Shown here in pieces: positions 16,023-62,200 of a stretch of DNA of 64,000 nt. The translations under genes were made by a program, and so were the position numbers. The notes beneath the pieces are model-generated. The model saw only the letters and a program-made list of their open reading frames with translations. It ran no database searches and had not been told where the DNA came from. Every line of letters begins with the position of its first letter. The stretch's first letter is position 1. Origin of the DNA: Dicyema japonicum (Eukaryota; Animalia; Dicyemida); contig RDEW01000008.1 of assembly GCA_011109175.1 (NCBI GenBank), forward strand, positions 326,588 through 390,587, given 5' to 3'.

Positions 16023-19000
16023 ATGGAAAATCAACTTGATGAAATTCAGACAGAGTTTATCAGAGTATTATATAAATATTTTATCTGCAAGAATGTATTT
16101 GAACGACATAAAGACAAGATGGACATCTTTAGTGAAGTTAAGAGACTTTATACAAATCTTGAGGATAAACTCCCTACAAAATCTTCAATAAAAATTATTC
16201 CCAACACTGTGAAAACTGATGAAATTATACAAATTCAATTAATGGCGAATCCATATGAAGTTTCCTTAGATTTTAGGTCTCCAATCCTTGAAAAAATTCC
16301 TTTTAAGACAGTTATTGATTTAATTAATTCAGGAAATATTTGATTTCCGAAAAACAAGACATATTGATTGTAGAACAGGCATGCACAGGGAAGGAAAGGC
16401 TACTACTAAACATTTACGATCTAAATTTGTTCAGAGACCTCACTTTAACGACTGCTCTATTTATGACTGTGATAATAATTTTGATGTTGCCGGTGCTTAT
16501 GTTCATGGATTTTTATAGACTTTTTGGCAACACATACAGATAATCCTGATGTTACAAAAAAGCTCGAGTCTCTGTCCACAACTTTCCTTGATCTTGAAAA
16601 TGTTTCTAATTGGGCCACAACCAATGAGGAAATCGAAGGTATAGCAGGTCAGTGTCCATTTGATTTAAGGTGTTCTACCGTTGAGGTAATTATAATTAAA
16701 CATATATAGTCAGAACAGTTGGATACTCATTTTCGTGAACTTGAGAATGAGTTTGACAATTTTATGAAAGTAAGGAAAGCTTGTAATTTTAGGGTTTGGC
16801 TTATGAGGATTCCTTAAATACAATGGAAGTGTCTTTAAATTCAGTATTATTTAAAATAAATTAAGAGCTCATTCATTCATGACGATTCATTTCAATTTTC
16901 ACTATCTGAGGAACATCCTACTAAAGCAACTTCCAAATATGAGTACGCATCACTTGTTGATATTTCTGTTGATTGTAACGAGTTTAGCCATATTCGTGAC
17001 AAAATGGCCCACATTGTAGGGTTCATTAATATTCTTTAGTGGCCTTTTGAGTTGGATTTATTTCAGAAACATGCTATTGCACTAATCGAGAATAGACAGA
17101 GTGTGTTAGTCTCTGCTCATACTTCTGCTGGAAAGACGGTTGTTTCTGAGTATGCGATTGCATTGGCCTTTAAGCATATGACTCGGTTTTTATTTTTACG
17201 TTATCTTAGTGTTGTTTACACATCACCTGTGAAAGCTCTGAGTAATCAGAAATTCAGACAGTTCAAACATACTTTTAATGATGTTGGAATCATAACGGGG
17301 GATGTACAGGTGAACAGAAGTGCTAGCTGTGTGGTAATGACTACTGAAATTCTCCGTTCTTTGCTATTCAATGGAGACAGGATGGTTCATAATTTAGAAT
17401 ATGTTGTATTCGACGAAGTCCACTACATAAACGATTCTCAGAGAGGTGTTGTTTGGGAGGAAGTTCTTATTTTGCTTCCAAATTACGTTGTAGTTGTTAT
17501 TCTTTCAGCTTCTGTCCCCAATGCCATGGACTTTGCAGAATGTGTCGGGTTAGAGCTATGCTAATGCGATTAGGTCAATAAAAGCTCGTAAAGTATTCGT
17601 GGTTGGAACTCTGAATAGACCTGTGCCATTGAAACCATACATTTATGTACCCCACCAATAGTACAACAAGTATTTTGTGTCATTTTAAACGAAAAAGGAA
17701 TCAGTTTTTGATAACAGAAGGTAGATTAGGGGTAATTATTGAGATTCTGTGAGGTTGCAAAAATCCTTAATAAAGAAGGGACAATCAATCATAATTGGGT
17801 TCACATAATAAATATTATTTCCCGCATGAACGATACTCCAATTGTCATTTTCTGCTTTTCAAAAAAACGTATAAGAACCATTTCCACTAAATTGATTGGG
17901 AAAGTATCCCTGACGACTGAGGGGGAGGCCCACAAAATACATGTCTTTTTAAACAAGACGTTACAACGACTTTCCAAATGTGACAGAGAATTGCCGCAAA
18001 TTTACTACATGAGGGAAACTCTAAGTTGTAGAATAGGGGTCCACCACAGTGGAATCTTACCTATAATGAAAAAATGTGTTGAAATGCTATTTGAAGTCGG
18101 TCTTGTTAAAGTTTTACTTATTTTCACAATCTTAGGTACTCTTTGCCACTCATACCTTCTCAATGGGCGTAAATATGCCAGCCAAGGCTGTCTTTTTCGA
18201 AAATATATTTAAATTTGAGGGAAAGGGAATGAGAATGCTCCTTCCTGGAGAATATTTGCAAATGGCTGGAAGAGCGGGAAGGAGGGGAATGGACACTGTT
18301 GGGAAGGTTATAATCAGTATGAAGCCCCCAATTCCAGACGAACTGGCTATACGGGATCTCATCACTGGTTCTGCCTGTCCTCTTCAATCAAGATTCAGGT
18401 TGTTTTTGACTTATTTCAAGACTCACTTACGGAACACTACTTAATTTACTTAAAACGGGAAACATGGACGTGGAAGATGTGATACGATTGAGTTTCTCAG
18501 ATTTTGGTGTACGTACATGTCTTGTAAAACAGGGAAAACAAATAAAATTATTGGAAGGGAATAATTCCAACACAAAGGGGGTAATTAACTGTCGTACATG
18601 TATGCGAGATATTAGAGAATTCAAGCTCAATTTTGATGACTTTTCTACAGAATTGGATATTTTGATTGTTTTATCTTTTTTTATTTTAGACTTGCGCTCT
18701 ATCAGCTGCCTATGTGTTTGTCCCCGGAAGAGTCATTGTTGTACGTGTTCGGAGTAAAAACTGTCTCGGAATTATCCTTAATAAACCTATATATAAAAAT
18801 ATTGGCAGCTATCAGGTCACATGCATTGTATTTCCACCACCAAACGACAAGCTTACTTCTCCTCCAATGTTTAATGGCTATGTGAGATATTTTACAAGTA
18901 ATTCTCTTATTGCAATGTCGTATATTGATGTTGAGAACATTATTTGGATTAGTGACTGTGTTATTGATATAAACGGTAATGTAATTATGAAGAATTTCCG

Positions 19001-19791
19001 TAAAAGGTTAAAGTGTGGTTATTTTAGAGGATCAAGCTCTCCTGAGGTTATGGAAATTAGGGATAGTTTGTACAAATATGCAGAGAATTGTGGGTTTTAT
19101 ATTCCATTTTTGAATAAACTCAAGCGTGACAACATGTTGAAAAGGAATATTCAGAGCATAAAGAGGATATTGACTGAATTTAATAAATTTAAATGTTCAG
19201 AATGTATTCATTTTGGGAGTCATGTATTATTATATTTGTTATACAGTTTAAATCAATCATTAAGGTTATGAAGAATGAGGAAGAATTAGAGAAGGTTAAG
19301 GGGGAGTACAAACAACAGGAAGAATCACTATATTCTGAGTACAACTGCAGATTAAATGTACTTTGTTTTATCAGTTTAGGTTCTCAAGTCTTTGAATTAT
19401 GTTAGTCAAACTGGAGTTGTTGAGTTGAAGGGGAATTTTGCTAGAATTCTCAATCACATGGAGTTATTTTTGACAGAATTGGCTGTTCATGGTGTACTCT
19501 CTTTACTAGAACCCCCCGATTTAGTGGCTGTCATGTCGGTGGTTATATATGAAGGTAAAATTAAACGAGCCCCAGGAATATTTTCTATGAAATTCGAACA
19601 AGTTGTTTTATTTGTAAATTGTAGGCTTTGGTAAAAATGTATGAATTGGCTGATAAAATTGATGTTTTGCAGAATAATGTTATTGACCAATTTGAATTTA
19701 TTTCCCCCAAACTTAATGATGGCTTGGCTGCTGTTACTTATAGCTGGGCCTTGGGTGTGGTACTCATCATCTTTATTCTTTTAGCCATTTT
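16023..19791 (+). CDS. SKIV2L: SKI2/SKIV2L DExH RNA helicase, about 16 tiny introns, 3' end missing, one broken exon
   Basis: [87 protein letters not shown], and the DSHCT start (SWALGV|PF). Ends at an n at 19792 followed by a LINE. In-frame TAG 17659 and TAA 17686; possibly a pseudogene. Confidence 0.9.
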
Positions 19792-19799
19792 NGTCCAAG

Positions 19800-21265
19800 G
19801 TGGATCACAGCCAAAAGGACTTAAACAACAATAATAAAATACTATGTGAAAATATCCTATAAAGACCATAAGAAGTCGGATGTATCCTCGAAATATCTCA
19901 GTAAACCGAAAAGGGAACAAGATATGATTCACTTCACTGAAAATGACGTGAGAAATGTATTGAAAACCATTAAAACAACCTAGCGGACCGGATAAGATCA
20001 CAATGATCCTCTTGAAGAATATGGAAGACCTTGGAATCGCTGCATTAACGAGGATATTCAACCACTCCATTAACAAAAATTCAATTCCAGCCTATGGAAG
20101 CTTACCCACCTACGTCCAATTTTAAAACCCGTAAAGTGAAGAAGGACCAGGCTTCATACAGACCGGTCGCGTTATTGTGTCCGGTGTCGAAACTTCTGGA
20201 AAAGCTGGTTCTTGCGAAAATCAAAAATTTTATCATGGATTTGTCATTTCAATATGATTTTAGAGAGGAGAGGTCTATTTCGACCCATTTATCTCCATTG
20301 ACTAACTTTATACGATATGATTTTTCGCACTGGCCGGGACACATGAAGACTGTACTTTGCTCCATAGACATCCACAAAGCTTTTGACTTAAGACTGTACT
20401 TTGCTCCATAGACTAACTTCCTTAGTGGTCGGAGGAAACGCGTCTGCATTTGCCATTCAAGGTCTATTTAACGGCTTCTTCCTAATGGTGTTCCCCAAGG
20501 ATCCCCTTTGTCCCCAGTATTATTCAATCTATTCATGGCGGACCTCCCCACATCGGACACCGAAAATGATATTATTCTTACTTATGCCGACGACATTGTA
20601 ATTAGTCACGTGATCAGGACATCCATATCGCCACTTCGAGATTGCAGCAAAATCTGGACCGTCTTAACGAATGGTTATCAAAGAATCGCCTAACTGCCAG
20701 CAGTGAGAAGTCCGTCACAAACCTATTTACATCAGACAAGAGACTGGGAAGACGGACAGTCTATCTGAAGACAAACAATGTAGTTAACCCTTTTAGAAAA
20801 TCTCAAAAGATCCTTGGGGTGACTTTTTACATGCACATGTCATTCTCGTCCCATGTTGAAAAGAAAACAAATGTCTTATAATGTCTCACTTGCTTATGGA
20901 AGTACGGAAATCATCCTATTTTAAGTGCTATATACAAACAATACATTGAACCATCGTATCTTTTAAGCATGTAATATCTGGGACTCATTCATCTCTTGGA
21001 CAAATGTCTTGAAGATCGAGGCTAGCCGAAAAAGAGCCTCCAAAATCACGGAACGCTGGATTTCTGGAGAGTTCCAGCCACCAATGCCTCTTGAAGCCTT
21101 GATACGAATGAACCATGGAACGCGTCGTCGTGACGCCGATGATCCAGTCACTCGACTGATACGTGGTTGAGGAAGGAGCATCGTGCCAAGATTAGGTCCC
21201 TGCTAGAGCGTGCTGGGATCACGTGATTAGTTAATTTGTGTAACCGTTGTCTCTGTTATTATTAT
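19800..21265 (+). mobile_element. I/Jockey-group LINE RT and 3' end, degenerate
   Basis: ASYRPVALLCPVSKLLEK, LCSIDIHKAFD, GVPQGSPLSPVLFN and YADDIV, ending LLERAGIT*. Confidence 0.85.
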
Positions 21266-21274
21266 AAGCCTTCT

Positions 21275-21620
21275 TGACTGAACGTAACGTCTAATGACAT
21301 CTGATCTGACACAGAAAGATGGACTTTTCAGCGAAGATCAATTCTCGTCAACTGGATCCCACCCGTGAGGTGACGGTACACACAGGGATTTTCATACTTT
21401 TTTTCTGACCAACTCCACTAGTGAAGATTACCATTATGAAATCTTCGCCCAAGAATGAAATGATATCCTCGACGGTAGCATGTGTGATGAAAATGGAAGA
21501 GAGTCGACCTACTTCTCCACCTCTCATCTGAAGCCTGTAACGGACTATTGGAGGATGGATTTAGTCGGCACAAGCAGACGTTCTTCTGTGGGTTCTTGGA
21601 TTAATTAGTTATGACTGTGC
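21275..21620 (+). mobile_element. tRNA-derived SINE-like element
   Basis: The 5' part matches the tRNA-like head at 33446-33500 without its B box. Contains CGTCA..TGGATCCCAC..TGACG (21346-21375). The 3' half is homologous to 48255-48480 on the minus strand. Confidence 0.5.
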
Positions 21621-21624
21621 TGGG

Positions 21625-23450
21625 TTTACTAAAAATTGTCAAGGGTAGCCTACTTCGATTTTTCCATTATTAGTTGGGGTGGATTATCAGGATAATACCC
21701 ACGTGGATGAGACCACCATTAGGATTAATTAACCATATTTTGATAATTAGNTGGGTTTACTAAAGATTGTCAAGGGTAGCCTACTTCGATTTTTCCATTA
21801 TTAGTTGGGGTGGATTATGAGGATAATACCCAAGTGGATGAGACCACCATAATGATTAATTAACCATATTTTGATAATTAGTAAACAGATTGTCATGGTG
21901 CTCAAGAGTAGTTTATAAATATACTAGGATGTACCGTGGTAAAGAGTTAATAATTAGCATGTATTCATTTCTCACATTCGAAGTGAGACCCATATAACCA
22001 TTGTGGGAACCCTTCTATTCGAATGGAGAGATGCATCCTTTTTAGTTTTTGCCCCACCTTCAGTAATGTGGGAATCCAACTGATATCAAGCGTCCAGCTG
22101 ATAGTATTGGGTATTCCCACACGTATCTTAATGTCATTGGTGATCCTAGTCCGAAGAGGATTTGATTGATGATATCCCAAGCTGGTCAGGTGAGGACAAC
22201 CAAAACTATGATCCTCCCAAGGTGATTTGCATAATTCTGAAATCTCTAAAGTTGTTTCTAAATTGGCGAAGGGAGGTTGTCATGAATCGTTTTTGTCATG
22301 GTGGACTTTGGTGGGGAATTTTCTTTAGCCATTACCTGATGTCCATGGCTTTAGAAACAATATGTCTTAGATTTTTTGTCGTTGCAGGGATGCATAGGAT
22401 TTGTTAGGTCGTTCAGGAATTGTAGGTTTCGTGTACAAAGGTGATTTCAATGAAAAGTACAAGAATCCCAATATAGATGCTATATATGTGTGCGCAGGTT
22501 GCAGCTAGTAATTGATCACAAGCCCACATTCTGAGTTTTATAAAGTTTTTGTAGATTTGAATGTGAAACACAGATAGACCAGGTGGAATTAATTCAGACT
22601 AGTTCTTACAAAGTGTTTGAATATAAGTTTAAGAATGTTTCTTCGTGTCCAATTTTGACTCCAGAAACAGTAGCGTTAAGTTTTCGTATGACCTTCAGGG
22701 TGACATGACCACGTGCAAAGAGTTCGACGGGGATAAAGTAAGTTGAGTATCAGGTATCGGTGTTGTTAGAATATCGAGATGTAACTTTTTCAAGGCTTCA
22801 TCAATATTATTGTGTGTTTGAAACAATTATTAAATCATATACGTAATAGAGTGAGCTCTCAAGAATATTACTCAAGTGAAAGTTAAACTGGGCGAGGGCA
22901 GAGCCTGTGGAACCTGTTTGGTTTGGCATGGTATATATTTGAAATCACAAGATTCGACTCTTTCCACCAGACAGACCTTAGCTAAAATTGGATGAAATAA
23001 TCTTGTTATAAAGCACGTGTCGTAAAGTTCTATTAAAAGCTTTGCTTAAGTTGATAGAGGCAAGGACAGTACGAAGAGGTGGTTTATGGTTAGTGAATCC
23101 ATTGGGGAAATAATCAGATTGTTAGGTGGTAGTGAATTGTTGTGTACGGAAACCGATTTTGATAGATAAATTGGTGTTTCGCTGTGGAAAGTTTTTTTAA
23201 TGGACAAGGCAGCAAAAATATTATTTTCAATGATTTTGGAAGCAGANAGGACAGTACGAAGAGGTGGTTTATGGTTAGTGAATCCATCGGGGATATAATC
23301 AGATTGTTAGGTGGTAGTGTACGGAAACCGATTTTGATAGATAAATTGGTGTTTTGCTGTGGAAAGTTTTTTTAATGGACAAGGCAGCAAAAATATTATT
23401 TTCAATGATTTTGGAAGCAGATGGAATCTTCATTCCTTTATCCTCACATG
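21625..23450 (-). mobile_element. Degenerate I/Jockey-group LINE
   Basis: Minus strand GFTNHKPPLRTVLASINLSKAFN and VPQALPSPS (RT domains), heavily decayed. Confidence 0.6.
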
Positions 23451-24420: not shown

Positions 24421-24709
24421 ACCTTGAAAATAATTTTCGACTTGACAATGGTCAGAGGGCTAGGAATTCGCAGCTCAATAGACTTATCTCTCGTCTCTAA
24501 TGGCTAATACCCGAGGATTCTACACTCCCTTCCATAATTATCTACTGACCAGANTCAGAGGGCTAGGAATTCGCAGCTCAAAAGGCTTATCTCTCGTCTC
24601 TAATGGCTAATACCCGAGGATTCTACACTCCCTTCCATAATTATCTACTGACCAGACAAACAAGAATTTTTCTTACCCAGAAAAAGAAATATTAGTACCA
24701 AATTTAGAA

Positions 24710-27147: not shown

Positions 27148-30100
27148 TCTACAAATAAATAAAATAACAACCAAAGACATAACTCTGAATCATCAGCACT
27201 AAAATGTAAATTAAACCCAAACCTTTTACACTTCTTATTAGAATTCTCCAACCTAAAATGAAATAAGCAAAATACAAATCATTATTATCAGATTCATTAG
27301 TGACAAACTCAACTATACTCTCGAAAGGTCTATTACTACAACAAATATACTTTTGCATTCCACCATATTCTCGTTCAACTCGTTTCAATGGTGTACTTGT
27401 CTCTATCCTCTGGTGAGGCAAATTTGATGACTTTCTAAACTAACTAAAGACCCAACTCATTCACACCCCTTTGATGTTTTCTTTTAGATGGATTCCTATT
27501 AAAAACTACCAAAAACTACGTCACAAACTCAAGGTTTTCAAGTTCCTCAGTGAGATGCTACAGTATTACATAAAAATACTGGTAAAATTGTCTGTCTAAC
27601 TTCAAGAGGGGCAAACACAATTTGTCGATTAAATGAATCCTATAAACTAACACATAAAAAGACTTCATTGACTTTGACAAACAGTTTGTGTGGAATGTGA
27701 GTAAATTCACAGTCTTTATCAGTCAAATGGTAATTGGATGATTTAACAATGATATGCAAGTGCATTATGTCACAAATAGCCCACAAAATCTGTTAATAAA
27801 CAAATGTAAAACTTTGTTAAAGTCATAGTCGACATAATTGTCAGAACAACGATATTCTTTTATTTTTTGAACATAGTGGATCAAATTTTTGTAATTATCA
27901 TTAGTCACAAGCAACACCATAAATGATCCAAGGGCCCTAGAACTTACAAACATGTCAACTTTGATATCTTCAAAAGACCTTCATTGTCATCAATTGATTT
28001 ACAAATGCCGAGAGAAGCCAAAAAATGCACAATGTAAGGAATAACAACTTCTGGAGCTGAGTTTTTATAGGTGACTGATAGTTAGATAAATAAAAACATG
28101 CTGTCTTGCAGAACCGGGAAGAAAATTCCCTCCTTTTATTAACATATTTGGATAAGAATTTCTTTGTAGAATTTTCATCGGTTCCTGTAAGTCCAAGAAA
28201 AGACAAAACAAAAAGACTCATAAACTGAATGGGAAGTTTCATCCAGTCTAATAAATTCTTGACTTTATCCAAAATGATATCCCTCAATTCTCTATGACAC
28301 CGCTAAAGTTTATAAAGTTAGAGAACCTCAACCACACTTTTCGTAGTCTTAGTACTGTCCATCTGATTGACTGTAAGAATGAAAACGTCATAAATCAGTT
28401 TTGGAGAAACAACCGAGTAAATATTACATTTCTGGCATAATTTGATAACTATGAGTGCAGCTTCTGATCGAAAGTGCATTCTTAAACATTCACTAACAAA
28501 TTAATTTTAAACTCACTGTTTCATGGAATCACCAAAACCCTTAACATCAAACAGAATGCACTTGTGCAACAACTCTAAACATTTTTTAACAATCTCCGAA
28601 TTGAGGTGAACCTTACTATACTGACATCCCAAAATAATTCGTTTCAGTAATTTTAAACCACAAATCTAAATTTAACAAACCAATTCACTTTTTTGTGGAA
28701 TAATTCGTCAACATCTTCCAAAGAGATCCACTTTGACTTTGCTGTAGTGGTCTTGTGCTTTAATGAGAATAGATTTAAAAAGTGGTTATTAACAAAATCT
28801 CCCATTTTCTCCAAAGCAAGTCCATCAACCATCTCACAGGACATCCCAACAAGTGTCATTTTGTGGATATAGTCATCATCGTCCACGGAGATGTTAGTAG
28901 AAACCGACTAATTATATTTATTAAAACACAACATTATATATTTCGGGTAAAGGCGAAATATTTGAAGCCATGTGGAGAATTCTTGCAGCAAGCTTAGTCT
29001 CCTTGGATGACTTGGGGGAAGATATTTTACATGAAAGAATTTCCCTTAAGATTCTGAGAAAAATAAGTTAACCCATACTCAAAATTGTCCCCAAAGTCCC
29101 TTTCCATGTTATTTCATATGAATAGTAAGAGTTGCAACGAATTAATCGCTGGAATATAGATAAAAAATGCATAATGACGACTCTCCCCTGTCACACCAAG
29201 TCGTTAAAGTTGAGAGGACTGCCTCCACTAGGAAAAATTATGGGAAATTTGTAAAAAGAATCTAAAATTAAAGTAAAGAAAAAGCCCAATAGTTCCATAA
29301 ATAATATTTCAAATTGTTTTTTGGAAATCAACATGGATTTCTAGATTTGACTGAAATGCTTTTTCATTAGACTGACAGAACTGATAATTTTACTGGAAGC
29401 ATATTCAATCAAATGTATGAATGTAAAAATGGAAAATAAATTAGCTAATAAAACACTGTGAAGATTTTCCACCCCTGCCAAATTAGCTAGTCGATTCTAA
29501 AAAAGAATCATAAATAATTTAAAATAATAAAGAATATTAAAATCCATTTAATAAGAATAAATACATTTTTCGCTGTCATTTCAGAATATTTGAATTCGGT
29601 GTTGATGTAATTTTTAAGAAAAATTAAATTTCCCCTAAAAATTGGCGAATTATCTGTCATAAAAAACTTCATCAGAAAAGTTAAAGTTTTCGGAGACCCG
29701 GTTGAAAGATATTCTTAGTTAAAAATAATAAAACTAGTTAGAGTTGATATTTTGGCATTTATAGAGTCAGTGGAACCTTCAGAATCTGTAATATCTTCGA
29801 GAATCATCAAACATATATTTCTAATCCTCTGAGTCCGTCTTATAATCCCAGTTAGGACGCTTTTATAGTAACAAAAAATACGTTTTCGAAGTCTGATCTT
29901 CCCTTATGAAAATCTCATATAACAGTTTAGCAGTGTTCTCAGGGCAATCAGCCGAAGAAAAAAGGAAAATTAGGCATTCATCAGCAAGCCTTCTGTTAAA
30001 TATTAAACAGAAAACAAATACTTGTCTTCAATATTATGCTGACATAAATGAAGAAGAATCTGTTCCACTACTTTCTGCATTTTACATTCATGCAATGGTT

Positions 30101-31599
30101 TATACTTTTCACTACACATTTCATGAGTTAAAAGTCTAGTCAAAGTCCACATTGCTTTTTTCCTCACAGAAATCTGGAAGAATTAACAATCAGTTACTAC
30201 TTTCTTGTCTCTTGTTTCTAGGAAGAGCATTTCTAGTAATTGAGAGTTAGGATCATCCATTGATTGTTTAATAATAACTCCGACAGAGGTGATGACCTCT
30301 AATCTGACCGACTCGTCATCATGTAAAGTACAAATCTCATCTACGAGAATCACATCTATTCCTACCTGTCAAACACATCCTTAGGGTTTCATCATTCTGG
30401 TAGAGTTTCATTCCTGCTTCAATGCAGGCTTTACAGACATCAACAGAGTCAGATTTAAAACTATCCACTAAAATAGCCACAAAGTACCACGACAAAAAAG
30501 TCTTCCACAGGGAAGTGTATTGGGCCAATGGGGGGCCGTCCTGCAAATTCTTCGAAAAGTAATCGCCAATGAATCTGATAAACTGTACTTTCTCAGCATC
30601 CGCGCACGTATTCTAATATTTAAGAACAAAATACCAATTTAAAATCAAGATGGAGTAAAGCAAGCTGAACAAAACTGAAAGAAATAATACTAAGTTCTTG
30701 GATGACGGAATATATACAGATCAGTGGTTTGCTTTTAAACATGAGACTCTTACAGTACTAAGATTGATTCAAATTGAAAACATTTTGTAGAGAAAAGCAT
30801 ATCGAGTCGTGGGATCTTATAAGGATTTCAACTAGAAGGTCGTGGTGTTCATTATTTAGCTTAAAGTAAAGTTAATGAGAAAACTTTAAACGGGGTTGTT
30901 ATCCACACAAGAAACTGGTCAAAGATGGGATCAAGGTCACGAGAGTCAGAAATGAGATAGGAAAGAGAATTTATCAAATATTCACTCACATCAGAATTTA
31001 GCTTACTAAATGGATAAAATAAATGTAAAACCATTTCAGACCGATTACTCTACGAAATAGGGCAAAAATAAAATCATTTGGATTTTCGAATATGCACACT
31101 ATATTGAAGATATTAATGTAAGATACATTCTGTAAAAATAACAAAAAACTCAGAAACATGTAAAAAACACTCGCATAAGGTGATATCAACGCCATTCCCC
31201 TCATCAAGGGACTTTATATTATCGATAAATAAATGTACGCATTTCTGAGTTAATACTAAAATAAAACCTCTGTTGTTGACTGATCTATGAAAGGAGATTG
31301 AGGAACAGTGAGACGGAACCCTTCAGAGAGAAGAGTACAGAGAAGAGATCTTATTCTTATGGAAGAAGATGATGAAAAGGTAGTCAAAAGGTGAGTGAAT
31401 ATGCTAGAGGTTTGACTTGGGAGAGCTGAATCCAAGTCTTTTATAATTTGATAATATTCCTATAAATAAGCGAAATTTGATTTACTTTTAGTTTCAATAC
31501 AATTTCTTTAAATGGTGATTCTTTTGATAAAAATTTTAATTCTTCTAAGATCATCACAACAATCACAAATCGAATACTACAAGCCCGCTTTTTATTCAT
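27148..31599 (-). CDS. PDS5: PDS5 cohesin regulator (HEAT repeats), more than 20 tiny introns, one lesion cluster
   Basis: The spliced product follows PDS5 end to end: IRSLLCTLLSEGFRLTVPQSPF, SLWKTFLS|FKSDSVDV, HDDESVR, TRDKK|ISVRKKAM, KETKLAAR, FRSEAA, NKRREF, APEVVIPYIVHFLA and LWAICDI. Start is 31599 or 31554; the 3' end is approximate. In-frame stops at 29343, 29240 and 29116. Confidence 0.85.
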
Positions 31600-34400: not shown

Positions 34401-34544
34401 TTTCTTTGGCCAAGAGTATTCAAGGAGTTTTCTTAGTTGGCCTCTGTGAAAAGAGTTAAGTTGTTCCATATCTTTATTTGATGTTCCCCAAGTACCTGAG
34501 TTGTACATGAGGACTGGTCGGACAAATCCATAAACGTAATCGCA

Positions 34545-36015
34545 GAGGAACACGAAGGATATAAGTATTTGGGTGTTACCGAAACTCTAAAGTCCCTTAT
34601 AATGCCTGAGACAAAGCGACAAATAACTGAAGGCATCCGTAAAAGAGCAGCGTTATTTTGTAAGACGTCTCTAAATACAAGGAATTTGTTCCTAGCATTA
34701 AATGAGTATGCTGTCTCGCTGCTAAACTACTACATAGGTGTTGTGGAGTTTGAGCCCAAAGAGTATGATGAGATGGATGTTGTGATCCGTTGAGTACTCA
34801 GAGAGAACCATGTCCATGTGCTGGCAGCCAATAAGGAGAGACTATATTTACTCCGTGATAAATTCGGCCGTGGACTGTGTGGAGTAGTCCAACTAAGTGA
34901 GCGCATCCTAATGCGAATGCACGACACCCTGATAGCTGGGTCAAGTGTGTCTGCTAGGAAGCACGCCATAATAACGACCGAGAAAACACGGGCAACCCAC
35001 CTAGGCACTATCAGACCTTTTTTGTCTGCTAAGTATGGTGTTGATGATGGTGGGCTAGTAAATGTGAAGGCGTTGATCGAATTACAATATAATAATTTGA
35101 TGGAAAAGATCAACTTAAAAAGCCTTCATAAGGTCCTCTTCAGAGCATTGGACAACCCACATGTCGACCTTAAGTCGTCGACAATATGGCTAAAATACGG
35201 TGACAACTCACCTCGATCGGAGGCGTTGTACACGTATATGCAAGACCGCAATATTTTTTGGGGTCGATCAACAAATACATGTCCCCACTGTAAGTCAAGG
35301 AGCATGTCGGTTGATCATTTAGCCACTCGATGTGGATCCATGCTCTGCCACGACTATGTGTGGAGGCACAACGAGGTAGTAAGGAGTCTTCATCTTCTAC
35401 TATGCAATAAGTATGGTATTCGCCACACCAGAAAGTTGCGGACTCATAAGGTGCAATCTGTAGTAGAGAACACCAGGGTCCAAATTAAGGTAGACAGTGT
35501 TATCCGTACCTCGGTGCTAGTCAAGCACAATAAACCGGACATTGTGGTACACGATAAGGAGTCTGGCCAAGTCCTTATCATAGAGGTTGGCATCACGTCT
35601 CAAGACCGTTTGCAGACTGTGGAGGTGGAGAAAAAAAGGAAGTATGACTTACTTGCAAACGAGATGGGGCAGATGCTTGGTTGCAAGGTCCTCGTTATTC
35701 CAATAGTAATGACGTGGGAAGGAATTGCAACAAAGTACCACAAGGGTTATCTGAAGCAGTTGGGGTAGATAGGAAGCTCCAGGCCTATCTACAGTCCACT
35801 GTATTAAAGTGGACCCTAGAGAGCCTGACACTGGAGTATAGGAGGCAGAGCCCTGAGATGCCATATGGGCAGAGGGTTCAATTGGACAAGGCGCTCTCGG
35901 AGTTGTTTCAGAAACCAGAATCGGACCTCCCTGAGGAGGCTGGCGAACAGGCAGGGGAGGAAGGTTGTTGATTATTAAATATATTAACTTTTTTTATTGT
36001 TGGTTAAATAAAGTT
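34545..36015 (+). mobile_element. R4/Dong-like RLE retrotransposon, 5'-truncated, young
   Basis: YKYLGV, LNTRNLFLALNEYAVS, ERLYLLR..GRGL, CCHC, RHNEV, NKPD and EVG motifs, with one stop and one frameshift. Confidence 0.92.
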
Positions 36016-45782: not shown

Positions 45783-45804
45783 NNNNNNNNNNNNNNNNNN
45801 NNNT

Positions 45805-46190
45805 TTATCAAATTCCCAAATTGGCCACAAATAGTTCAGGAACAATTTTGGGCAAATTTGATGGACCTTACTGTAAACTGATTTTCCAAACAAATATCCT
45901 AATCTGTCAAATTGGCCACAAATAGTTCAGGAACAATTTTGGGCAAATTTGATGGACCTTACTGTAAACTGATTTTCCAAACAAATATCCTAATCTGTGG
46001 ACGAGAGCCCAATTTTTTAATGGTTTTCGATCAACCTATTTGGTGGAATCTGGCTTCAGTAAAGTAGTATTACTTACAAATACGAGGAATAGACTTGTTG
46101 TCAATAGATGTGATCTACGATTATCATTCTCAAATATTGAGCCGGATATAACTAAGTTAGTAATGGGAATATAAATTGTTTCGTATGTTT
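45805..46190 (+). mobile_element. hAT (Buster/Charlie-type) fragment
   Basis: Inverted copy of 43385-43680. Confidence 0.8.
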
Positions 46191-47729: not shown

Positions 47730-48150
47730 GTGCGCTCCATTATTATAGAATTGGTCGGGTTTCTTTAAAGTCTTCAAGAAAGGAAACACATTTCGCCGTG
47801 TAACTTGAGCATCCGTGTTTCCGTTTGAATTTATCTAAAAATCCATTATAATTTTTGAAATTACTGGGTTTTAATTACAAAAATGTTGCATTGGTATTAA
47901 AGCATCATTCAATAAACCAGCTATAAAATTGATTTTTTCGATACCTTAAGATTCTAACTCCATTCTACGAACTTGTCTTCATGCTTCAGATATTTTGGTT
48001 TATATGAAACTTTACAAGACGGCTGATGTTTTTATAATGTGTCTTTCTTCAGTAAAGGATTATTGTTTTTTTCGAAAACAACTGCGAAAATCTTTAAGCT
48101 ATGTGTTGCCACGAAACAGGATCATCTTAATAATTTACAATTTGATTAAA
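47730..48150 (-). mobile_element. pogo/Tigger transposase remnant
   Basis: EDKFVEW, FKNYNGFLDKFKRKHG and KLHGE. Confidence 0.65.
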
Positions 48151-48254
48151 AAAATTTAGTTAGCACAACATACTTTTTGCAAATAAAATTAAAAAAATAG
48201 CTATACAAACAAATTTTATACATTAACCCTCAGTCTTGTTTGATAAAATTAATA

Positions 48255-48480
48255 ATGAAGTTATTATTATTAACCCAGGCTTACAATCTTCGGCAAGCTC
48301 TCACAAACAGTCATAACTAATTAATCGGAGAAAGGAATCCAAGGGAGAGTAGGTCCGCCCTCTTCCATTTTCGTCGCACGTACTACCGTCGCGGACATCA
48401 CTTAATTCTTTGGCGGAATAGTTTTCTTAATGTAATTTTCACTAGAGGACTTGGTCAATGATGAGGTTGGAAAGTCGGGT
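48255..48480 (-). mobile_element. SINE-like 3' half
   Basis: Minus strand matches 21405-21620 (TGACCAA..CTAGTGAA, GACGGTAG..GAAAATGGAAGAG, GATTAATTAGTTATGACTGT). Confidence 0.55.
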
Positions 48481-48576
48481 GTCTAAAAAGTTGTATAATT
48501 TTAATTAAAATATAAAAAAATATTTCAGTAATTTTAAAATGTTTTAAAATTAGATTACGTAGCTAAAGGGGTATTC

Positions 48577-49401
48577 ATGTTGTTAAAATCTGGAAATCTC
48601 AAAATTCGATGGTATCATCGCATTTTAATAAATACTCTAAAATATGGGAAAGTCCCCAAACATTTGGCAGTAATAATGGACGGAAACAGACGTTTTGCTA
48701 GATTAAATAAACTTAAAACTTCAGATGGGCATAAACTGGGCTTCGAAACCCTTTCTTTAGTATATTTATTAAATTATTTATTTGGATTATTGAATGGTGC
48801 AGAGAAGTCGGTATTCCAGAGGTTTCTTTCTACGCTTTCAGCCTTGAAAATTTTAAACGGTCTTTAGAAGAATTGGATGATCTCTTTGATCTTTTCTGTG
48901 AAAAAATGAAGGATTTACTACGAGAAATATAAAAATTGATTTTATTAAGAAAACTTTTAAATGATTTGGAGGTCAAAATTAGATTCATTGGAGACCTTTC
49001 AAGACTTCCAGAAGACATCCAACAGCTCACTTCGTCTATTTCTAACCACACTCGGTCATTCAACAAGTAGTCATAGTTTCTTATAGATATTTACTCAATA
49101 TTGCTATTGCCTACACATCTCGGGAGGAAATGAGATACGCTACTCAGTTGATTCTTGAAAGAGGAGCTAATGAAGTCGATGTGAAATCTTTTGATGAGTT
49201 TTTGTATACTGAAGGGTCTCCTCTTCCTGATATTTTAATGAGAACTTCAGGAGAACGAAGACTTAGCGATTTTATGACATGACAGGTTGGATTTGTTTTT
49301 AAATGAAGTGTGCTGAGAGTAAACTGCAATTTATTGATACTTTGTGGCCTAATTTTACTTTTTGGGGATTATTTATGGTTTTAATGAACTATCAACTTTG
49401 A
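48577..49401 (+). CDS. DHDDS: Dehydrodolichyl diphosphate synthase (cis-prenyltransferase), 5 exons, with in-frame TGA and two non-canonical introns; functional status uncertain
   Basis: PKHLAVIMDGNRRFA, GH..GF, YAFSLENFKRS, IRFIGDL..LP, AYTSREE, PDILMRTSGERRLSDFMT*Q and LWPNFT. Introns 48760-48785 (GT-GG), 48929-48949 (AT-AG), 49067-49086 and 49286-49308. Confidence 0.9.
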
Positions 49402-49439
49402 TTTTGATTTAATTTATATTTTTGTTTATAGGAGTTAAT

Positions 49440-51460
49440 GTTCTAATGTACAAGAAAGTATCCGCCGAACTGGATGAAGACTATGAGGAATACAGGTTTC
49501 TGAGAGCGGATTGTAGGCATTATGGAATGGTCTTTGTGGTCCATCAAAGCAAAAGTATTGTAAAATCAATAACAGTATTTGAATAATTCAGATATGGATT
49601 AGTAATAAATTATCAACAATAATAAATGTTTCCCACCATAACTGCAATAAATATGAAATCTTATTCACTATGAAGGCACTTGCTTTCAAGCGATCACAAA
49701 TCAGCTATTTTTTGTTTTAAATTTACCAAGGCGCAATTGCACAAACACATAAACATCATTGCACAAGAATCTCGGTTTAATTGTTGAACACAAATTCTGA
49801 CATTCGGAAAAGATTTGTGGAAAGGATCAACAACCACATCTCGCGATTACCTGATATCCGTCAACCCGACCAAAGTTGGAACGGAATTACCGGCAGAATT
49901 AGAATTGCAACCTTGAGTTTATTAAAGGTTGTTTCAACAAGGTCCACNTCGGAAAAGATTTGTGGAAAGGATCAACAACCACATCTCGCGATTACCTGAT
50001 ATCCGTCAACCCGACCAAAGTTGGAACGGAATTACCGGCAGAATTAGAATTGCAACCTTGAGTTTATTAAAGGTTGTTTCAACAAGGTCAACATTCTATA
50101 TAAAAAAATTAATGAGTTGTCAAGAATACAAAGGAACTTAAAACATGGAAACAAAAATGCTAAATGCAACCTTAAAAAAGAAGAGAAAGGAATACAGAGG
50201 AATATAAAGAAAATAGTAAAAAAACTTGAACTGATTAACATTGCCTTGGAACTAGAAAAATTATATAACGGTCCGAAAATGTTCAAGGCAGTTATGAATA
50301 AATCAAGTATATCCATAAACATTAAAGTAACGTACCGAGTATGAAACTGACTTAAAAGAAAATGCTATGTTATTGCTTCCCATTTCAAAAACAAATTCCA
50401 CAACGAGCACCACCAAATTGAACAATTTACTGGCAATCCAAGGCCTCTAAATGACTCAATTCATACGAAAAGGTTCTTAGCGCAATCAACAAGCTAAAAA
50501 TAACACTAGCTCAGGAATATTAATATTAAAATAACTCCCGAGAAAACAAAATTAATTAAGTCTCCCTTGTGCCGTATTCAGAATCATCCTTTCCATCAGC
50601 CTCGACCATGATCTTCTATTGCCCGCTAGTTCTCTTAGGTTCTAGGTCGTCTGCCGACGTTAGTCCCATACCAACCGCCAATAGATATTCATTCAAGATA
50701 GTTGGAATTGTCGTTTTTACCCTTCACGGAATCCGAGTAATGTGTGTGCGAATAGTCGTCCATTGTGACATTTGCGAAGACCTGGTCATTTAGACGTAAC
50801 ACGTGGCCAAAGAGGCTCCATCTTGAGTTGAAAATATCATCTGACAGCACGTCGGATTTGGATTTATTAAAAAGTTTTGCATTAGAGATATTCATAGGCC
50901 AGTTGATCTTTATTACCGATTTGAGCTGAACTCTCTGGAAGGAGTCAATACGGTCCATTTCCCGTTTAGGGATTCCCCAAGTCGCCGATTTGTAAATTAG
51001 TACCGGAATGACAAAAGCTTTGTATATTCTAAGCCTGGTGTTTAGTACTATCCTCTTCTTGTGCCCCCATATTAACGATATTTTTTTAGTGCACTCATAG
51101 GAAGGATTTCCTACAAGAAACATCTTTAGAGAGCCCAGGAATAGATGGAATAAACAGAGAATTCATAAAAAATTGTCAACATAACAAAATATTTGAAATG
51201 CGTATACCTTTACCACCGGGAGAAAGCCTTCTAATCCCAGTCCAGAAACCAGGGAAAAATCGGCCCTATCGAAAACCTCTGTCTAATTATACTACTAAAC
51301 TCAATAAGGAAGATTTTATTAAAATTTATGCCTAAAATAAATAGTCTGGTGGTAGAATACTGCAATCAAAGCTGATTCAGGAGCGATCGATCAACTTCAG
51401 ACATTGTATAGGCCCATCGACGAAGATGCGCTATAACACAAAAATACAAAAAAGAAATAA
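49440..51460. mobile_element. Nested degenerate RTE LINEs (plus copy split by a minus copy at about 50530-51120)
   Basis: Plus strand: HYGMVF..SDH..IPVQKPGK..ILLNSIRK. Minus strand: LRIYKAFVIPVL..RWSLFGHVLRL. Confidence 0.75.
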
Positions 51461-54935: not shown

Positions 54936-54939
54936 AAAA

Positions 54940-57470
54940 AATTAACTATCATAAATGTCTATGCACCACACTACGGGCGAGTAATCAAAAACCTCGGTGA
55001 GCTCGAGGAATTCTATTTAGAACTATCAAGCACATATTAGAATAATGCGTCCTTGTCCCTTGTCTTTGTTGCGGGGGATATGAATTCAACGGCCGGAATG
55101 CAAATAGGACCCGAAAAATCCTCTATTGTACGACACGGGTGCGGAAGGAGAAATGTATCTGGAGCCTCTGTGAACTTTTGCGAGGCAAATACCGTATTCC
55201 TGTGCAACACGGCCTTCACACACTCAGCTCGCTACAAGACTACATGGCACGAACAAAGAAAAAACTCAGTCGGGAAGACCGTAAATATATACAATCAAAT
55301 CGACTACATTATCTGCCGAAAGTCTGATAAACACCTGATAAATGATGCACGTTCTTACCAGGGGACAACAACTTACAGCGACCATAGGATTATTATTGCT
55401 GTACTGTCTATAATAAAGCCCTTGATGGGAAAAAAATATATTGAAAACGCGAAGACGGCGATACAAAGACCCAATATATATTTTCAGACAGAAAAATTGT
55501 GGTTAGAGCCCACCTGTAGGGCTAAAAATCACGAACAAATCGAGACTCTCATGGAGATAACCGTACCTGAATCATCAGTACGAACTCTGTGAGATCAACC
55601 AAAGCAGGTAATCTCCAAGTCAGCTGATATATGCCTTGGAGTTCCCAATCATCACGCTCTAAAATTAGATCACCACCCTAACGTGCCAGATATGGCAAAG
55701 CATTGCAGAGAGCTAAGGTTAAAAGCTACAAGCACTTCAGACGAGAGTATAAAAAAGAGCTTAAATTCAAAAAAGGGAACTAAAATAGGGAATCAAAAAG
55801 ATGAACAACATTTACGGGAAATTATTACATCCCTATTAAAAGATGTGGAATGCCTAGAAGACAAATAAAAGACGGCTACTGCAGACAAAGAAAGGACAAA
55901 ACATCCTTCACATCAAAGACAAAAAAGGAAAATTCGTGGGTAACCCAGAAAAAAAGCCGAATTGCACGTTACTTTGAAATGTTGCTGAATACAGACAATA
56001 AGGAATTTCCCTCTTTACATGGAGAACCGAGGGCATTATTGATTGTAATCACAGTGGAAGAAGTTGAATCATCTCTAAATAAACTGAAGAACAACAAGAG
56101 TGCTGGGTCAAACAACATAAGCCCTGAGCTTTTAAAATATGGGCCAAAAAACTTAGTGAAACAATTGTAAAAACCTAAATAACATCTTTAAAACTAATAC
56201 CGATCTAGGACATGGAAATGGATTATTATTACTTATACAAAAACAGGACAAATCAAAAGGACTAGTAAAAAAATTCCGCCTGATCATACTTCTGAACTCG
56301 ATATGCAAGGTGCTGGCAAACATGGCACTATGCCGGACCTATCAGCAAGTCAAAATGGGTTCCGTATATGGAGCCATAGATGGCGCTGTACAACGGACCG
56401 CAACTACAGTGTTGGGAATAGGTCTTTCCAGAGCTTTTGACTCAATAAACAGACAGAAACTGATGAATGTGCTTGAGCAAATATTGGATGAATCGTCGGT
56501 TAGGATAATCAGACTACTACTTGCGAATACAAGACTATCTGTGAGGACAGAAAGAGCAACTTCCCGTAGTTTCAAAACAACGATTGGGACACCCCAGGGT
56601 GATTCTCTCTCCCCTTTACTATCCACCATATGCCTTAAATCTGCACTCCGCGACCTCCGTAAATGCTATATAGGAGACATAGAAGAGACATCTTATGTGG
56701 ATGATGTGAATTTCGTATAACGGGACCGCACTCCAACACATACTAGAAAATGCACTTGCGGAGCTTGAGAAATGGTCTCTCAGCGTAAATGTTAACAAAA
56801 CTGAAATTACTGAAATCAAAATAGAATACGATATTACTCATGTAAGATGGAGACGTACTAGTAAGCTCGGCTCTCTACTATGAGACGCTGAAGATGTACT
56901 AAGGAGAAAAAAATGGCAAATGCGTCAATGGCTAAACTGAGGAAAGGATGGCTAAGAGCGAAAAGACTTGGAATTGACATCAGATGCAGGCTTTACAATG
57001 CCTTTGTGAAACCAATTCTACTGTACAACGCTGGGACATGTGGAAGTTCCTTTAACGAACTATTGAAACTGGATTCGTTCCATAGAAGACAAAAAGAATA
57101 TTACTCAGAATGGAGTGGCCACGTAGAATATCAAGCAGTGGTATTTACAACAAGTGTATGTGTTCATACATCAGGAAGGATGCGATAGATGCTCGGTGGA
57201 GGCTATTTTGACATGTATTAAGAATGAACCCGGATGCACCCGTTAACAAAGCGATGGAAGATTATTTTGACAGTTGCGACAAACCCTCCCGTGGACGACC
57301 TAGATTGACACTTCCGACAGCCTTAAACAAAGATCTAAATCTTGTGAGAAAAAATCTAAAGACGGGGGACGACCTGGACGAATTGAGATCATTAGCATTC
57401 GACAGAGGAAGATGGAGGAGATTAACTCTAAATATTGTTTCTATGAGTGTTCCACATGCGGGGCTATAAA
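54940..57470 (+). mobile_element. RTE-clade LINE, degenerate, endonuclease to 3' end
   Basis: INVYAP, VAGDMN, NQIDYII, SDHRII, LSRAFDSI, GTPQGDSLSP, YVDDVNF and RGRPRLT. Confidence 0.9.
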
Positions 57471-57489
57471 CATTATGGCTTTCGTGAAA

Positions 57490-58830
57490 GTGCCATAATG
57501 GTAAATTTATCCCACTCAGGATCCCAAGGTCGGCGCATCTAACAGCTGCCTCCCGTCTTTAAAGCTAATCTCGAGAAAAGTCGATGACAATACTCAAGAT
57601 GCCCGGATGCGCTTTCTTTACTATGAGCCTCTTGTCCTCGGATCACATTCAACCGAACTGAAAGAAGGGAACTTCAATTCAATCATCAAGAGAAATGCCT
57701 CTAAATACGGAACTGTTAACCAGGAGACTCCACTGGGAAGTCATTCGATTGGTGATCATTCGCCTTCATCGTCTAGGATCAAGAAAGACAAGTGGGATAT
57801 ACGCAAAGAAGTGAATAAGAAGGTAATGGTCAAGGACATTTGTGGTGCCCTGCCTACGCTTTCAAGCAATGATAAGGTTCTTTCACTAACTAAAGAAATC
57901 CTCGAGCTCATCATCCAAAAACAACCACTCGCCCACTCGGATCTACGCGAGACAGAAATTGGGAAGGACATTCTACATTGGCAACCACCACAGGTGCAGC
58001 AGTGCTGGCTTGGACGGCCTACGTCCGAGCCATATAACGGATTGGACGCTGAACCAGTACTATGCATGGCTCGGGAAGTCTGGACGTGACTGAGTGTTGG
58101 ATTCCTGAAGAACGCTAATAAACAACGAGAATGGGACAAGTTTTTATGCTCCAAGATCATAGACAAGATAAAACCTGTGTTTGATCAGCATCGTTTGGCT
58201 TCGGCATCGACGAACGAGAGTGGAGCCTGCTCGAAGCACTTGGGACACTATTGGATGACGACGCGACGAGGATTCAGTCCGCCTCGGATGTGGAGGAATG
58301 GCCGACTTGAGAGGTCTTTGCCTTCTTTCTTGCCGGAGGAGTGCTGGAAAAAGTCCAAAGTACGCTGCAATCAACGAAGTTATTACTTGGGGGCTTGAGG
58401 CTGCTAGATTTCCTGTCAAATTAGAGCCGCTTGGACTTGCTCAAGCCAACCGAAGACCGGACGGAGCCACTCTATTCCTATGGGAAAGTGATAAATATCT
58501 TGCCTGGGATGCCACCTGTGTCGATAACCTCTCTCCCTCCAACCTTGTTGTGACAGCAACTAACCCAGAGTCTGCTTCGGAGAAGGCTAAGACCATAAAG
58601 TTGAAGAAATACGCATGTCTTGATAAGAAGTTTATTTTTGAACCAGTCGCCGTGGGAACCTCATGTAACATAGAAAACAGGTTACTGGTCCTGCTAAACA
58701 TAATCGGCTACCTCATCGCCAGGAAAAAAATGATAGGTGAGAAAGGAGCTGGCTCATTGAACGCATTTCTTTGCAAATCGTCAGGGGAAATGCGTTCTCA
58801 ATTATAAGAGGAGCCAGCAGTTGTTAACTT
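57490..58830 (+). mobile_element. CRE-like element, internally deleted
   Basis: RRPDGATLFLW..LAWDATCVD, KKYACL..FEPVAV and IVRGNA. Confidence 0.75.
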
Positions 58831-58839
58831 TTTTTATTT

Positions 58840-59140
58840 ATTTAACCCAAGAACACCAATAGTTAATTTAATTGTATTAAACTAATTAGGTGATCCCGGC
58901 CGCCTCCATCAGGTCTCTCATCTTTTTCCAGTGGACCTTCCGAGATCCAACACAGCTTCTCTGAGGACGGGAGGGTTTTGAAAGAAAATTAAGAGGGGTG
59001 ATGTAGAGTCTTCTAGTAAGACCCAATCCATTGGAGCATTGTAGGAAGTTGGATTTTCGGCACAGAGCGGCGAATCCCTTCCCATTTTGTCCGATAAGGT
59101 CTTCCAGAGAGGTGGGTTTGAGACTGACTGTTCTCACGAG
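58840..59140 (-). mobile_element. I/Jockey-group LINE 3' end
   Basis: ORF ends KMRDLMEAAGIT* plus the shared 3' UTR. Confidence 0.7.
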
Positions 59141-59250
59141 CTTGCCAGTTGTTAACTTAGTTTTTGCGTTAATAAAATTAGTTTATAATAAAAAATATTA
59201 AATTTAATTAATTAATTTTGGCGCGGATATTGAATAACTTCTTAGTTAGC

Positions 59251-62200
59251 ATGCTTTTTTTAATTATCAAAATTTCTAATCCATTGGGAAGGATGTTGAT
59301 AAACTCAGGAATTTTAGTAGATGCCAAAAATAATATCACATGTATTCTATTTTATTTATATTTAGCCAAGACACAGTCTATTATTCGTCATTAAGCGTCA
59401 TATATGAGAAATTTAGAAAAATCAGAGATTAATAAAATTAAGTTTTATATATAAAAATTGTCATCTCTGGAAAATTTGTATTTTTAATCTAAACAATTTA
59501 GATTTGTCTATTTAGTTTCACCTCTGAAGGTTGAACTGAATTACTTAAACGAATCTCAAAATTTGCTACGACTTTTGTTATCTGCTCAAAAATTTTAGGT
59601 TTTCATATTTAGTTGAGCATTAGACTACGATAATATCAATTATAATCCAAAAATTCGAGCAGCCACAAAACTTTGACGAAAACTCTGAAAACTTGAATTT
59701 TTTAATAATCCTACTAAACCAATTAAAATGGCTAAAATATCATTTTCTAGAGATTCAGGTATTCAAAATTTCTCATTTCAAGCTTCTAATTGTATATTTT
59801 GTAACCAATTTGATTCAGAACTGTCAGTTTAGACTTTTGGAAGCCCTTTTATCTTCTCTACCAGAGATTTTCTTCACTTTTAAGCCAGAAATCCTATCAA
59901 GTCAACAATACAGATGTTTGTTGACTGACATTTCAACGTAAATGGTTAAAGTACATCATTTGAGAATACGAGATCGAATACAAAACGTTCAGGTCTTACT
60001 GGACTGCCTTCAGTCTATCCCTCTATCAGGAAATGACTTTTATGAACGGGTTTTGTCTAATTTGATATAACTAGATAATTCCCCAAGTTATTGATATTAC
60101 TTTGAGATATCATCGAGATCTTAAACATCTATTTTGCTCTGTTTCGGCCTCTTTGGATACTAACTGTTCGGAATCTGTCAAAATTATCGAGAATTTGCGG
60201 ATTGCTCTTATTACCATTTTCAGGAGGAAGGAAAATACTTATTTACCCAAGGGGAGGTCAACGTATGATGATATGTCAGATGATTTGAATATTGGATTAG
60301 AACTTATGGAGGCTGTGAAAAAAAAAATTTCATACAAAAATATATTTTGTGAAGTTTTTATGAAAATTTTTTATTCTTTTCTAATGAAAAATGAATTTGA
60401 TTTCTTTATTTTACTAATATTCTATTCTCAAAGCCACAGAATTCCTCATGCAAACCTTTTATCTAAATTGAATCGACTTTTGAAGATATGTGTCGCAGAA
60501 AACCTTTTTTCCGACTGTTTTGACGTTTATTTTAGTTCCTTAAAATATTTATGGTCCTCCTTAATTGAGTTCGCTGATACGTTTTCGAGTTCGGTTCACT
60601 TTCCTTACATTTATGCCGAACTTTTGTTGGCTTCTGAGAATGATGACATTCTCAAAGCATCTGTTTTGGAAAACATTTTTATTTCCATCAAAAATGGAGG
60701 TGTAAAGATTGTTGTAGAAAACCACCTGTTTGTGATTGAAAAATTTGTAAATTCTGTCTTGTCTTTGAACTGTTTATCTATTTATTTTAATGATTTGATG
60801 ACCTTACTCGAAAACAGAACATATACGACTTTGCTGTTCTCTATCATTTCAATATTTTGCGTGAATTTGTACTATAATGATAAAGACACTAAATTTACCG
60901 TTAAATTCAATAATTTTATCCTCAATCGTCTCCTTTCTTCCCAACCAGCTTCTGGATCATTTTTGTACGGCATACAAGCTACAGTCAAAATTTTATCAGA
61001 CTTCATAAGGTTTACTGTTAAAAGTGGATTTAGTCATTATTACCCCCCTGATGATATCATCTGTGTTTGGAATCTGTTTGATGATGTAATTTCCTTCTCT
61101 CTTATTTGTGAAGTTGGTTTCATTGCATTTGCTGATCAATTGACTAATAGTATTTCCAAAATATGACAATATTCTGATAACAAAGTACTTTTTGGGTTCA
61201 CTTTGTTTGCTGGAAAGGTCGAAGGCTTTGCTAGGATTCTATTCAAGGAGAAGATGCTCATAAAATCCTCCGACAATTTTCGTTCCATAGAAAATGTTGA
61301 TTATGAACTGAAATTGACTTCCCATATGTTATTGGGATTTTTATTTGTTTAGAGAATCTGTCCTGCCCAGTTGGGTTGGTTTATTGTTTGAATTATCCGT
61401 CGCTAAGCAGACATTGGACGATTTTGTGAGAAATGTGGCAGGTTTGGAGGAAATTTTATTTTGCAATGGGATTCTCATGGAATGATGTTTGTGAGGACTG
61501 CAGTGACCAAGCCAGGCGTATTTTAAATTGTCTAAATTGTTGCATAGAGGTTATATGCATATTCTATTACTAGTCACTTAACTTTATGGCAAAATGCTAT
61601 AATTATGGAATTTTATCAATTGATTATTTTTACAAACGGATGGATTCCATTGTCGACCTATTGACTCGTTTCACTCATCTGTGGCAGAACGGGGAATCAC
61701 TTACAAATACAATTGTTAGAATTGACTGTTCTTGTGTTCTCGATAAACACAAGAATATCTCTCAACATTTTGAAACAGTTTAGTGTTGTGAGTAAGTTCT
61801 AAGGACTCACAGTTTGATGGAAATTGCAACAGACTGGCTATTCGGGCTCTTATTGGTTCCTATACTACATTTGCCTTTAGGTATATTTATGATTATTGTA
61901 GAAAAGTCAGTGAGGATGTTTATTGTCTCTATTTTGCAAGATTTTTGGTTTCGTTTGTCTTTATTTTGTAAGGATGATGTGGTCAAAGGAAAAGAGTCGT
62001 TTCCTTGTTTTCTTAATGAATTTCTTATTGGTATTTTGTATAAGCAGTTGTTGTTTATAAAAGTTATGTGTAATTTAATTTTAGACAAAAAACAACCTTT
62101 CAAGTAATTTAAATAATATTTTAATTAATTTTATTTGTGTATATTATCGACAATTGGTATTATTATTTGTTACAATTTAGATTGACAATGATAGGGAAAA

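Follow-up and report, generated by a model that had tools for sequence, protein, structure and literature searches.

The 64,000-nucleotide (nt) stretch analyzed here, referred to as the window (G000:C356:326588-390587), lies on scaffold C356 of the Dicyema japonicum reference and carries genes resembling SKI2, PDS5, DHDDS, and FANCD2, between which the DNA is largely transposon sequence. An earlier note on this DNA had reported ten in-frame stop codons at coding positions of these four genes, together with odd introns, and presented them as a candidate system of recoding or restorative editing in an animal nuclear genome. The published assembly comprises 67.5 Mb in 377 scaffolds (PMC6736024), and our genome-wide searches covered 67,542,437 bases in 377 contigs. 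The assembly was produced by merging Platanus (Illumina) and Falcon (PacBio) assemblies, followed by SSPACE, GapCloser, and HaploMerger, from parasites pooled from a single octopus, with a heterozygosity of 1.24% (PMC6736024). The window itself contains 13 single-N positions and four longer gaps.

The DHDDS gene, which encodes a cis-prenyltransferase, occupies positions 48577-49401 on the plus strand, as defined by matches to Pfam PF01255 and by alignments to the structure of human DHDDS (6w2l), to which the exons were aligned singly. The five exons (48577-48759, 48786-48928, 48950-49066, 49087-49285, and 49309-49401) are separated by introns of 26, 21, 20, and 23 nt. The matches to PF01255 cover profile positions 1-184 and occur at this single locus genome-wide. 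In an exon-by-exon search of exons 1, 2, 4, and 5, all four aligned to both 6w2l and 6z1n. With reference to 6w2l, exons 1 and 2 are contiguous, the former ending at residue 60 and the latter starting from residue 61; the alignment of exon 4 ends at residue 217 and is followed by the codons TGA-CAG, and exon 5 starts from residue 220. The in-frame TGA (49280-49282, plus strand) thereby falls exactly at human residue 218, which we take to be the Trp of the LLWQ motif. Although the letters of all ten reported stops are present in the assembly, this TGA is the only one among them at a position that significant homology marks as coding. Two of the introns on the same strand are also unusual in the assembly: intron 2 (48929-48949, 21 nt) has AT-AG ends, and intron 1 (48760-48785, 26 nt) has GT-GG ends.

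We compared this part of the window (48100-49750) with the DNA reads of the same sample, using Logan contigs with a depth for each site from the libraries X1, X2, and X3 and from a small 2017 run, X5. A single 1064-nt contig of X1 (48420-49483) spans DHDDS and has 28 single-letter differences from the assembly and zero indels. Its depth of 482.6 equals the full local depth, flanking unique contigs having depths of 409-503, and the shorter contigs of X2 and X3 concur with it. At position 49282, the reads have G where the assembly has A, turning the stop codon into TGG, at depths of 482.6/482.6 in X1, 24.5/24.5 in X2, and 41.7/41.7 in X3. All three libraries also carry G instead of A at 48929, giving intron 2 a GT instead of an AT donor, as well as T instead of A at 48947, which improves the acceptor tract of the same 21-nt intron, now GT-AG. 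The assembly letters at the listed sites within the gene (48585-49445) have essentially zero depth, apart from traces at 49327 and 49403. At 49588, there is a genuine minor allele of about 25% with the same letter as the assembly, so minor alleles are detectable in these data when they are present. Once the listed differences are applied, the DHDDS protein is intact apart from the GG acceptor, and the read letters match the human protein where it is informative, namely at V in EVxVYAFS, R in DLxRxK, and W218. These data show that the TGA and the AT donor of DHDDS were created by substitutions private to the assembly. Because the reads have TGG and GT, neither a new genetic code nor RNA repair is needed. 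The earlier note had itself named a sense codon and a canonical donor in the genomic reads as evidence against its headline, and both were found at DHDDS, the most diagnostic of the four genes.

The differences between reads and assembly follow a distinctive pattern. When the substitutions were classified on a locally joined version of the gene, 13 of the 19 coding differences were nonsynonymous and six were synonymous, which is about the ratio expected without selection. In the direction from reads to assembly, the 36 tallied differences comprise 13 C>T, 10 G>A, and 4 A>G changes and 9 transversions. The assembly thus has the appearance of the read sequence with random, GC-to-AT-biased substitutions added to it. 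When this spectrum was simulated on 6.5 kb of open exons from the window, 16 +/- 5 stops arose per 11 kb at a substitution level of 2.6%, and 8 +/- 4 at 1.3%, so that all ten reported stops are covered numerically.

Matters are different for the GG acceptor of DHDDS intron 1. At 48784-48785, the reads have the same letters as the assembly: a contig of X3 (48410-49127) has 17 differences from the assembly, none of them at this site. The exon junction across 48760-48785 is exact in comparison with human DHDDS (6w2l). The other three introns of the gene are GT-AG in the reads, and intron 1 alone departs from this rule. The introns of dicyemids are the shortest among known bilaterian ones, with a median of about 26-27 nt, and all that is left of their splice signals is GTa at the 5' end and AG at the 3' end (PMC13644364, PMC6543705). 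With lengths of 20, 21, 23, and 26 nt, the micro-introns of DHDDS fit this published ultra-short class, whereas the GG end of intron 1 differs from the published dicyemid intron logos, which were built on gene models and show AG only as the acceptor (PMC13644364, PMC6543705). We tentatively suggest that the GG-ending 26-nt intron might truly be spliced, in which case the Dicyema spliceosome might rely chiefly on distance and a terminal G to choose the 3' ends of ultra-short introns, with AG being dispensable; we regard this as possible, though still doubtful. The earlier note had offered readthrough combined with a relaxed spliceosome as one of its options. The read-confirmed acceptor keeps the spliceosomal half of that option alive as a lead, while the readthrough half loses its DHDDS case with the TGG in the reads. 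A read-confirmed GT-GG intron is a small but testable lead on how introns of 20-26 nt are recognized.

In SKI2, the lesions are concentrated in a zone on the plus strand (17647-17753) with TAG at 17659, TAA at 17686, and TGA-TAA at 17709-17714. The stops (17659-17735) follow the conserved RPVPL motif and precede the next helicase block. All of them would be removed in frame by just one canonical 107-nt GT-AG intron, predicted from the DNA sequence to span the whole zone (17647-17753). In an alternative model, a 35-nt exon resembling the human ELFLLLDSRGAF strand would be kept between two tiny introns, 17647-17669 and 17705-17743, both of which would be non-canonical at one end. A diverged SKI2 paralog fragment on C101 (78% identity) has the same stops with the same spacing and layout, and the stops are therefore old. 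The 3' end of SKI2 is cut at 19792, beyond which LINE (long interspersed nuclear element) sequence follows. Positions 1-1322 of C103 correspond to 18470-19791 of the window at 98.8% identity, with 16 mismatches and 0 gaps, and the correspondence stops exactly at the N at 19792; the truncation is therefore a scaffold misjoin, and the true continuation lies on C103, which then holds the missing 3' end (DSHCT positions 113-171 in a Pfam search). The window and C103 versions of SKI2 differ by about 8-9 nonsynonymous vs 3 synonymous changes. On C103 (1-2992), the last exon of SKI2 is itself duplicated.

The three stops of PDS5 lie on the minus strand in a zone (29054-29376) with TAG at 29341-29343, TGA at 29191-29193, and TAA at 29068-29070, all in one frame. 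From 29496 to about 28930, nearly 200 codons can be read in this single frame with the three stops included. A 36-nt GT-AG stretch (29376-29341) has the TAG as its last codon, and a 48-nt GT-AG stretch (29196-29149) with a good pyrimidine tract has the TGA as its second; both lengths are multiples of three. The TAA sits in a canonical 25-nt GT-AG stretch, which exceeds the length needed for the frame by 1 nt. Five of the six stops in PDS5 and SKI2 are thus located within possible canonical in-frame introns (36, 48, and 107 nt), the exception being the PDS5 TAA. Canonical GT-AG stretches one base longer than the frame needs occur at three places, 17647-17670 (24 instead of 23 nt), 17704-17743 (40 instead of 39 nt), and 29078-29054 on the minus strand (25 instead of 24 nt); the one-base excess could be due to chance, to single-base assembly errors, or to a shifted cut site. 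An exhaustive search for chains of canonical GT-AG introns returned hundreds to thousands of open solutions, and with so many of them, the existence of a canonical solution is not diagnostic. The pieces of the PDS5 lesion zone have no Pfam match, and coding by homology can therefore not be claimed there. All three PDS5 stops are also found in paralog fragments on C347 and C58, with identities of 89% and 78%; because they are shared with these fragments, the stops are old and not recent damage. The PDS5 region (27500-31500) has at least seven partial copies elsewhere (C58, C113, C347, C157, C355, C354, and C185) with 73-89% DNA identity, and the two that were aligned (C347 and C58) contain many frameshifting indels. 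A FANCD2 fragment was found on C157 (78%), which bears pieces of both PDS5 and FANCD2.

The FANCD2-like gene (59395-63427, plus strand) is highly divergent and contains in-frame TAA codons at 59452, 59485, and 59939, TAG at 59596-59598, and TGA at 61164. The TAG directly precedes the GT of a putative 25-nt GT-AG intron (59599-59623). Only the last exon (62846-63424) matches the Pfam family FancD2 (PF14631), at profile positions 1328-1411 of 1418 with an E-value of 1.7e-10, and it is the sole such locus genome-wide. The nine other pieces of the gene have no Pfam match, and the N-terminal exons also have no match in the Protein Data Bank (PDB). Because the N-terminal exons are without significant homology, the placement of the TAG at a conserved Gln is a by-eye alignment only. 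At the noise level measured in DHDDS, a gene of about 4 kb would be expected to carry several false stops. An exact tandem duplication of a 130-nt exon piece (62350-62609, plus strand; 98% identity) shifts the reading frame of FANCD2. A homology search of a protein collection with a 363-residue open reading frame (ORF) of FANCD2 returned nothing, nor did an exact look-up of the first ORF of DHDDS.

The window shows signs of poor assembly at many further places. Abutting tandem duplicates of 102-282 bp flank 11 of the 13 single-N positions (14921, 21751, 23247, 24554, 40369, 43024, 47106, 47358, 49948, 52720, and 53387); over a total of 1992 bp, these duplicates differ by 49 mismatches and hardly any indels. 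These duplicated flanks look like contig overlaps left unmerged by gap closing, and the 130-nt duplicate in FANCD2 looks to be of the same kind. The assembly gap at 45783-45803 lies inside repeat DNA and in none of the four genes. Its right flank equals other repeat copies of the window at 98-99% and is also tandemly duplicated (45817-45907 equals 45908-45998), and the ORFs around it are transposon-like. This gap affects none of the claims on genes because the nearest one, DHDDS, begins 2.8 kb away. A short repeat just upstream of DHDDS (48270-48440) has word depths in X1 that rise to about 461,000, compared with about 480 for unique sequence, a roughly thousand-fold excess. Within 48100-49750, the run X5, which is possibly a transcriptome, touches only the high-copy part of this region at 48348-48411. 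A 1457-bp element at 34544-36000 has at least 40 copies genome-wide at 96-98% identity. The window copy of this young transposon has 21 private substitutions vs 0-1 in its seven closest copies, which hardly differ among themselves, a comparison that is biased because these copies were picked as best matches.

Could the stop codons nevertheless be read as sense codons? Context-dependent readthrough or an ambiguous nuclear code (UGA=Trp, UAR=Gln) would account for the assembly TGA lying exactly at a conserved Trp and for the FANCD2 TAG that aligns by eye with Gln. However, the codon at the Trp site is TGG in the genomic reads, the alignment of FANCD2 lacks significance, and no tRNA gene was found within the window. 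The eRF1 gene, which had been singled out for inspection, lies on C101 and contains, in the assembly sequence, NGTSMISL, TATNIKSRVNRLSV, and LYLCDNKFHTE, i.e., unaltered canonical GTS, NIKS, and YxCxxxF motifs; a second match to eRF1_1 is a Pelota-like gene, as judged from its translation. Two dicyemid genome papers mention no nuclear code change: PMC6543705 uses the relevant terms in mitochondrial contexts only, and "stop codon" is absent from PMC13644364. We therefore consider such a code highly improbable. Restorative adenosine-to-inosine (A-to-I) editing, by which TGA would become TGG and AT would become GT in the transcripts, has in its favor that, at both DHDDS lesions, the assembly has A in place of the required G. 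Since these positions (49282 and 48929) are already G in the DNA reads, there is nothing left to edit, and this explanation, which the earlier note had listed among its options, is the least credible one, with next to no probability. The headline of recoding or restorative editing is thus not supported: in its best case, the genomic reads have TGG and not TGA, and GT and not AT, and the motifs of the termination factor are canonical.

The most convincing explanation, and in our judgment a highly probable one, is that neither recoding nor editing takes place and that the lesions are assembly-private substitutions and in-frame micro-introns in a poorly assembled, transposon-rich window. The letters of the window would deviate by roughly 1-3% from the dominant DNA of the sample through substitutions only, which are unselected and mostly put A/T into the assembly where the reads have G/C. 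The same process would account for the stops of the other genes wherever these are coding, and the remaining stops of PDS5 and SKI2 would be old features inside ultra-short or in-frame introns. Such stretches of PDS5 and SKI2 would have been mistaken for coding because introns with lengths that are multiples of three preserve the frame. This agrees with the third option of the earlier note, which was already favored there: either a consensus error or a mosaic that includes a decaying allele or paralog. Several observations weigh against this explanation. Of the four genes, the read letters were compared for DHDDS alone; Logan contigs drop rare variants, so that the assembly alleles may exist at low frequency; the substitution-only, transition-rich pattern is atypical of raw PacBio consensus, so that the explanation gives no technical source for it; it also gives no reason for the GG acceptor of DHDDS intron 1, which the reads confirm; and the intron models are predictions from the DNA sequence.

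The lesions might instead be biological without belonging to working genes, if the assembly had captured a rare decaying haplotype or a young segment duplicate and the functional copy had been discarded by haplotype merging. The transition and GC-to-AT bias resembles natural mutation, the sample was pooled, with 1.24% heterozygosity, and was assembled with HaploMerger, and the minor allele of about 25% at 49588 is real and matches the assembly. The region has also been duplicated repeatedly, with fragments of PDS5, FANCD2, and SKI2 on other scaffolds. On the other hand, the DHDDS contig has full depth (482.6 vs 409-503), so that the private alleles can make up no more than a few percent of the three libraries; the roughly 40 differences include zero indels, whereas the old paralogs show many; and the noise level is one-sided and varies between contigs. 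We lean towards technical error, arising for instance in the PacBio or merging steps of the assembly, over a very rare decayed haplotype because of the full read depth and the missing indels, and we regard the capture of a haplotype or duplicate as conceivable but rather unlikely. No second intact copy of these genes was found in the assembly: the Pfam matches of DHDDS and FANCD2 occur at this locus only, the copies of PDS5, FANCD2, and SKI2 are fragments of 73-89% identity, and the three fragments that were aligned (two of PDS5 and one of SKI2) are riddled with indels. Genuine loss of all four genes, which would mean that this reduced parasite carries them as pseudogenes in its working genome, might be suggested by a genome with only about 5,000 genes and a BUSCO completeness of 76% (PMC6736024), by the decayed copies of PDS5, FANCD2, and SKI2 elsewhere, and by the strong divergence of the FANCD2 and PDS5 proteins. 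Yet DHDDS as given by the dominant reads is intact except for the GG acceptor, the window copies retain long open frames while the paralog fragments are full of indels, and the truncation of SKI2 is a scaffold misjoin. Gene loss is accordingly a very improbable account of the four genes.

A change of the nuclear code, or repair of genes by editing, in an animal would be a major discovery if true, but it is not supported here. Of more practical consequence, in the only public reference of Dicyema japonicum, 1-3% of the letters are, at least in places, unsupported by the sample's own reads. Such private letters produce false stops, false losses of splice sites, and false amino-acid changes. Single-base oddities in this reference, such as non-canonical introns, odd active-site residues, and pseudogenes, therefore need to be checked against the reads first.

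Ambiguous or reassigned nuclear stop codons are found in Condylostoma magnum and Blastocrithidia nonstop. The window resembles these organisms in the assembly only, where all three stop codons occur within genes and TGA occupies the position of a Trp. In contrast to both of them, the best case here is gone in the genomic reads, the motifs of eRF1 are canonical, and the stops are clustered in a badly assembled window. Another parallel is with the consensus errors and minor-allele mosaics of draft assemblies merged from short and long reads, in this case with Platanus, Falcon, GapCloser, and HaploMerger (PMC6736024). Unlike raw PacBio consensus errors, which are indel-rich, the differences found here are substitutions only and have a GC-to-AT bias. 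With draft-assembly artifacts in general, however, the window shares reads that disagree with the assembly regardless of codon position, duplicated flanks at single-N joins, a scaffold misjoin, and a transposon-rich region.

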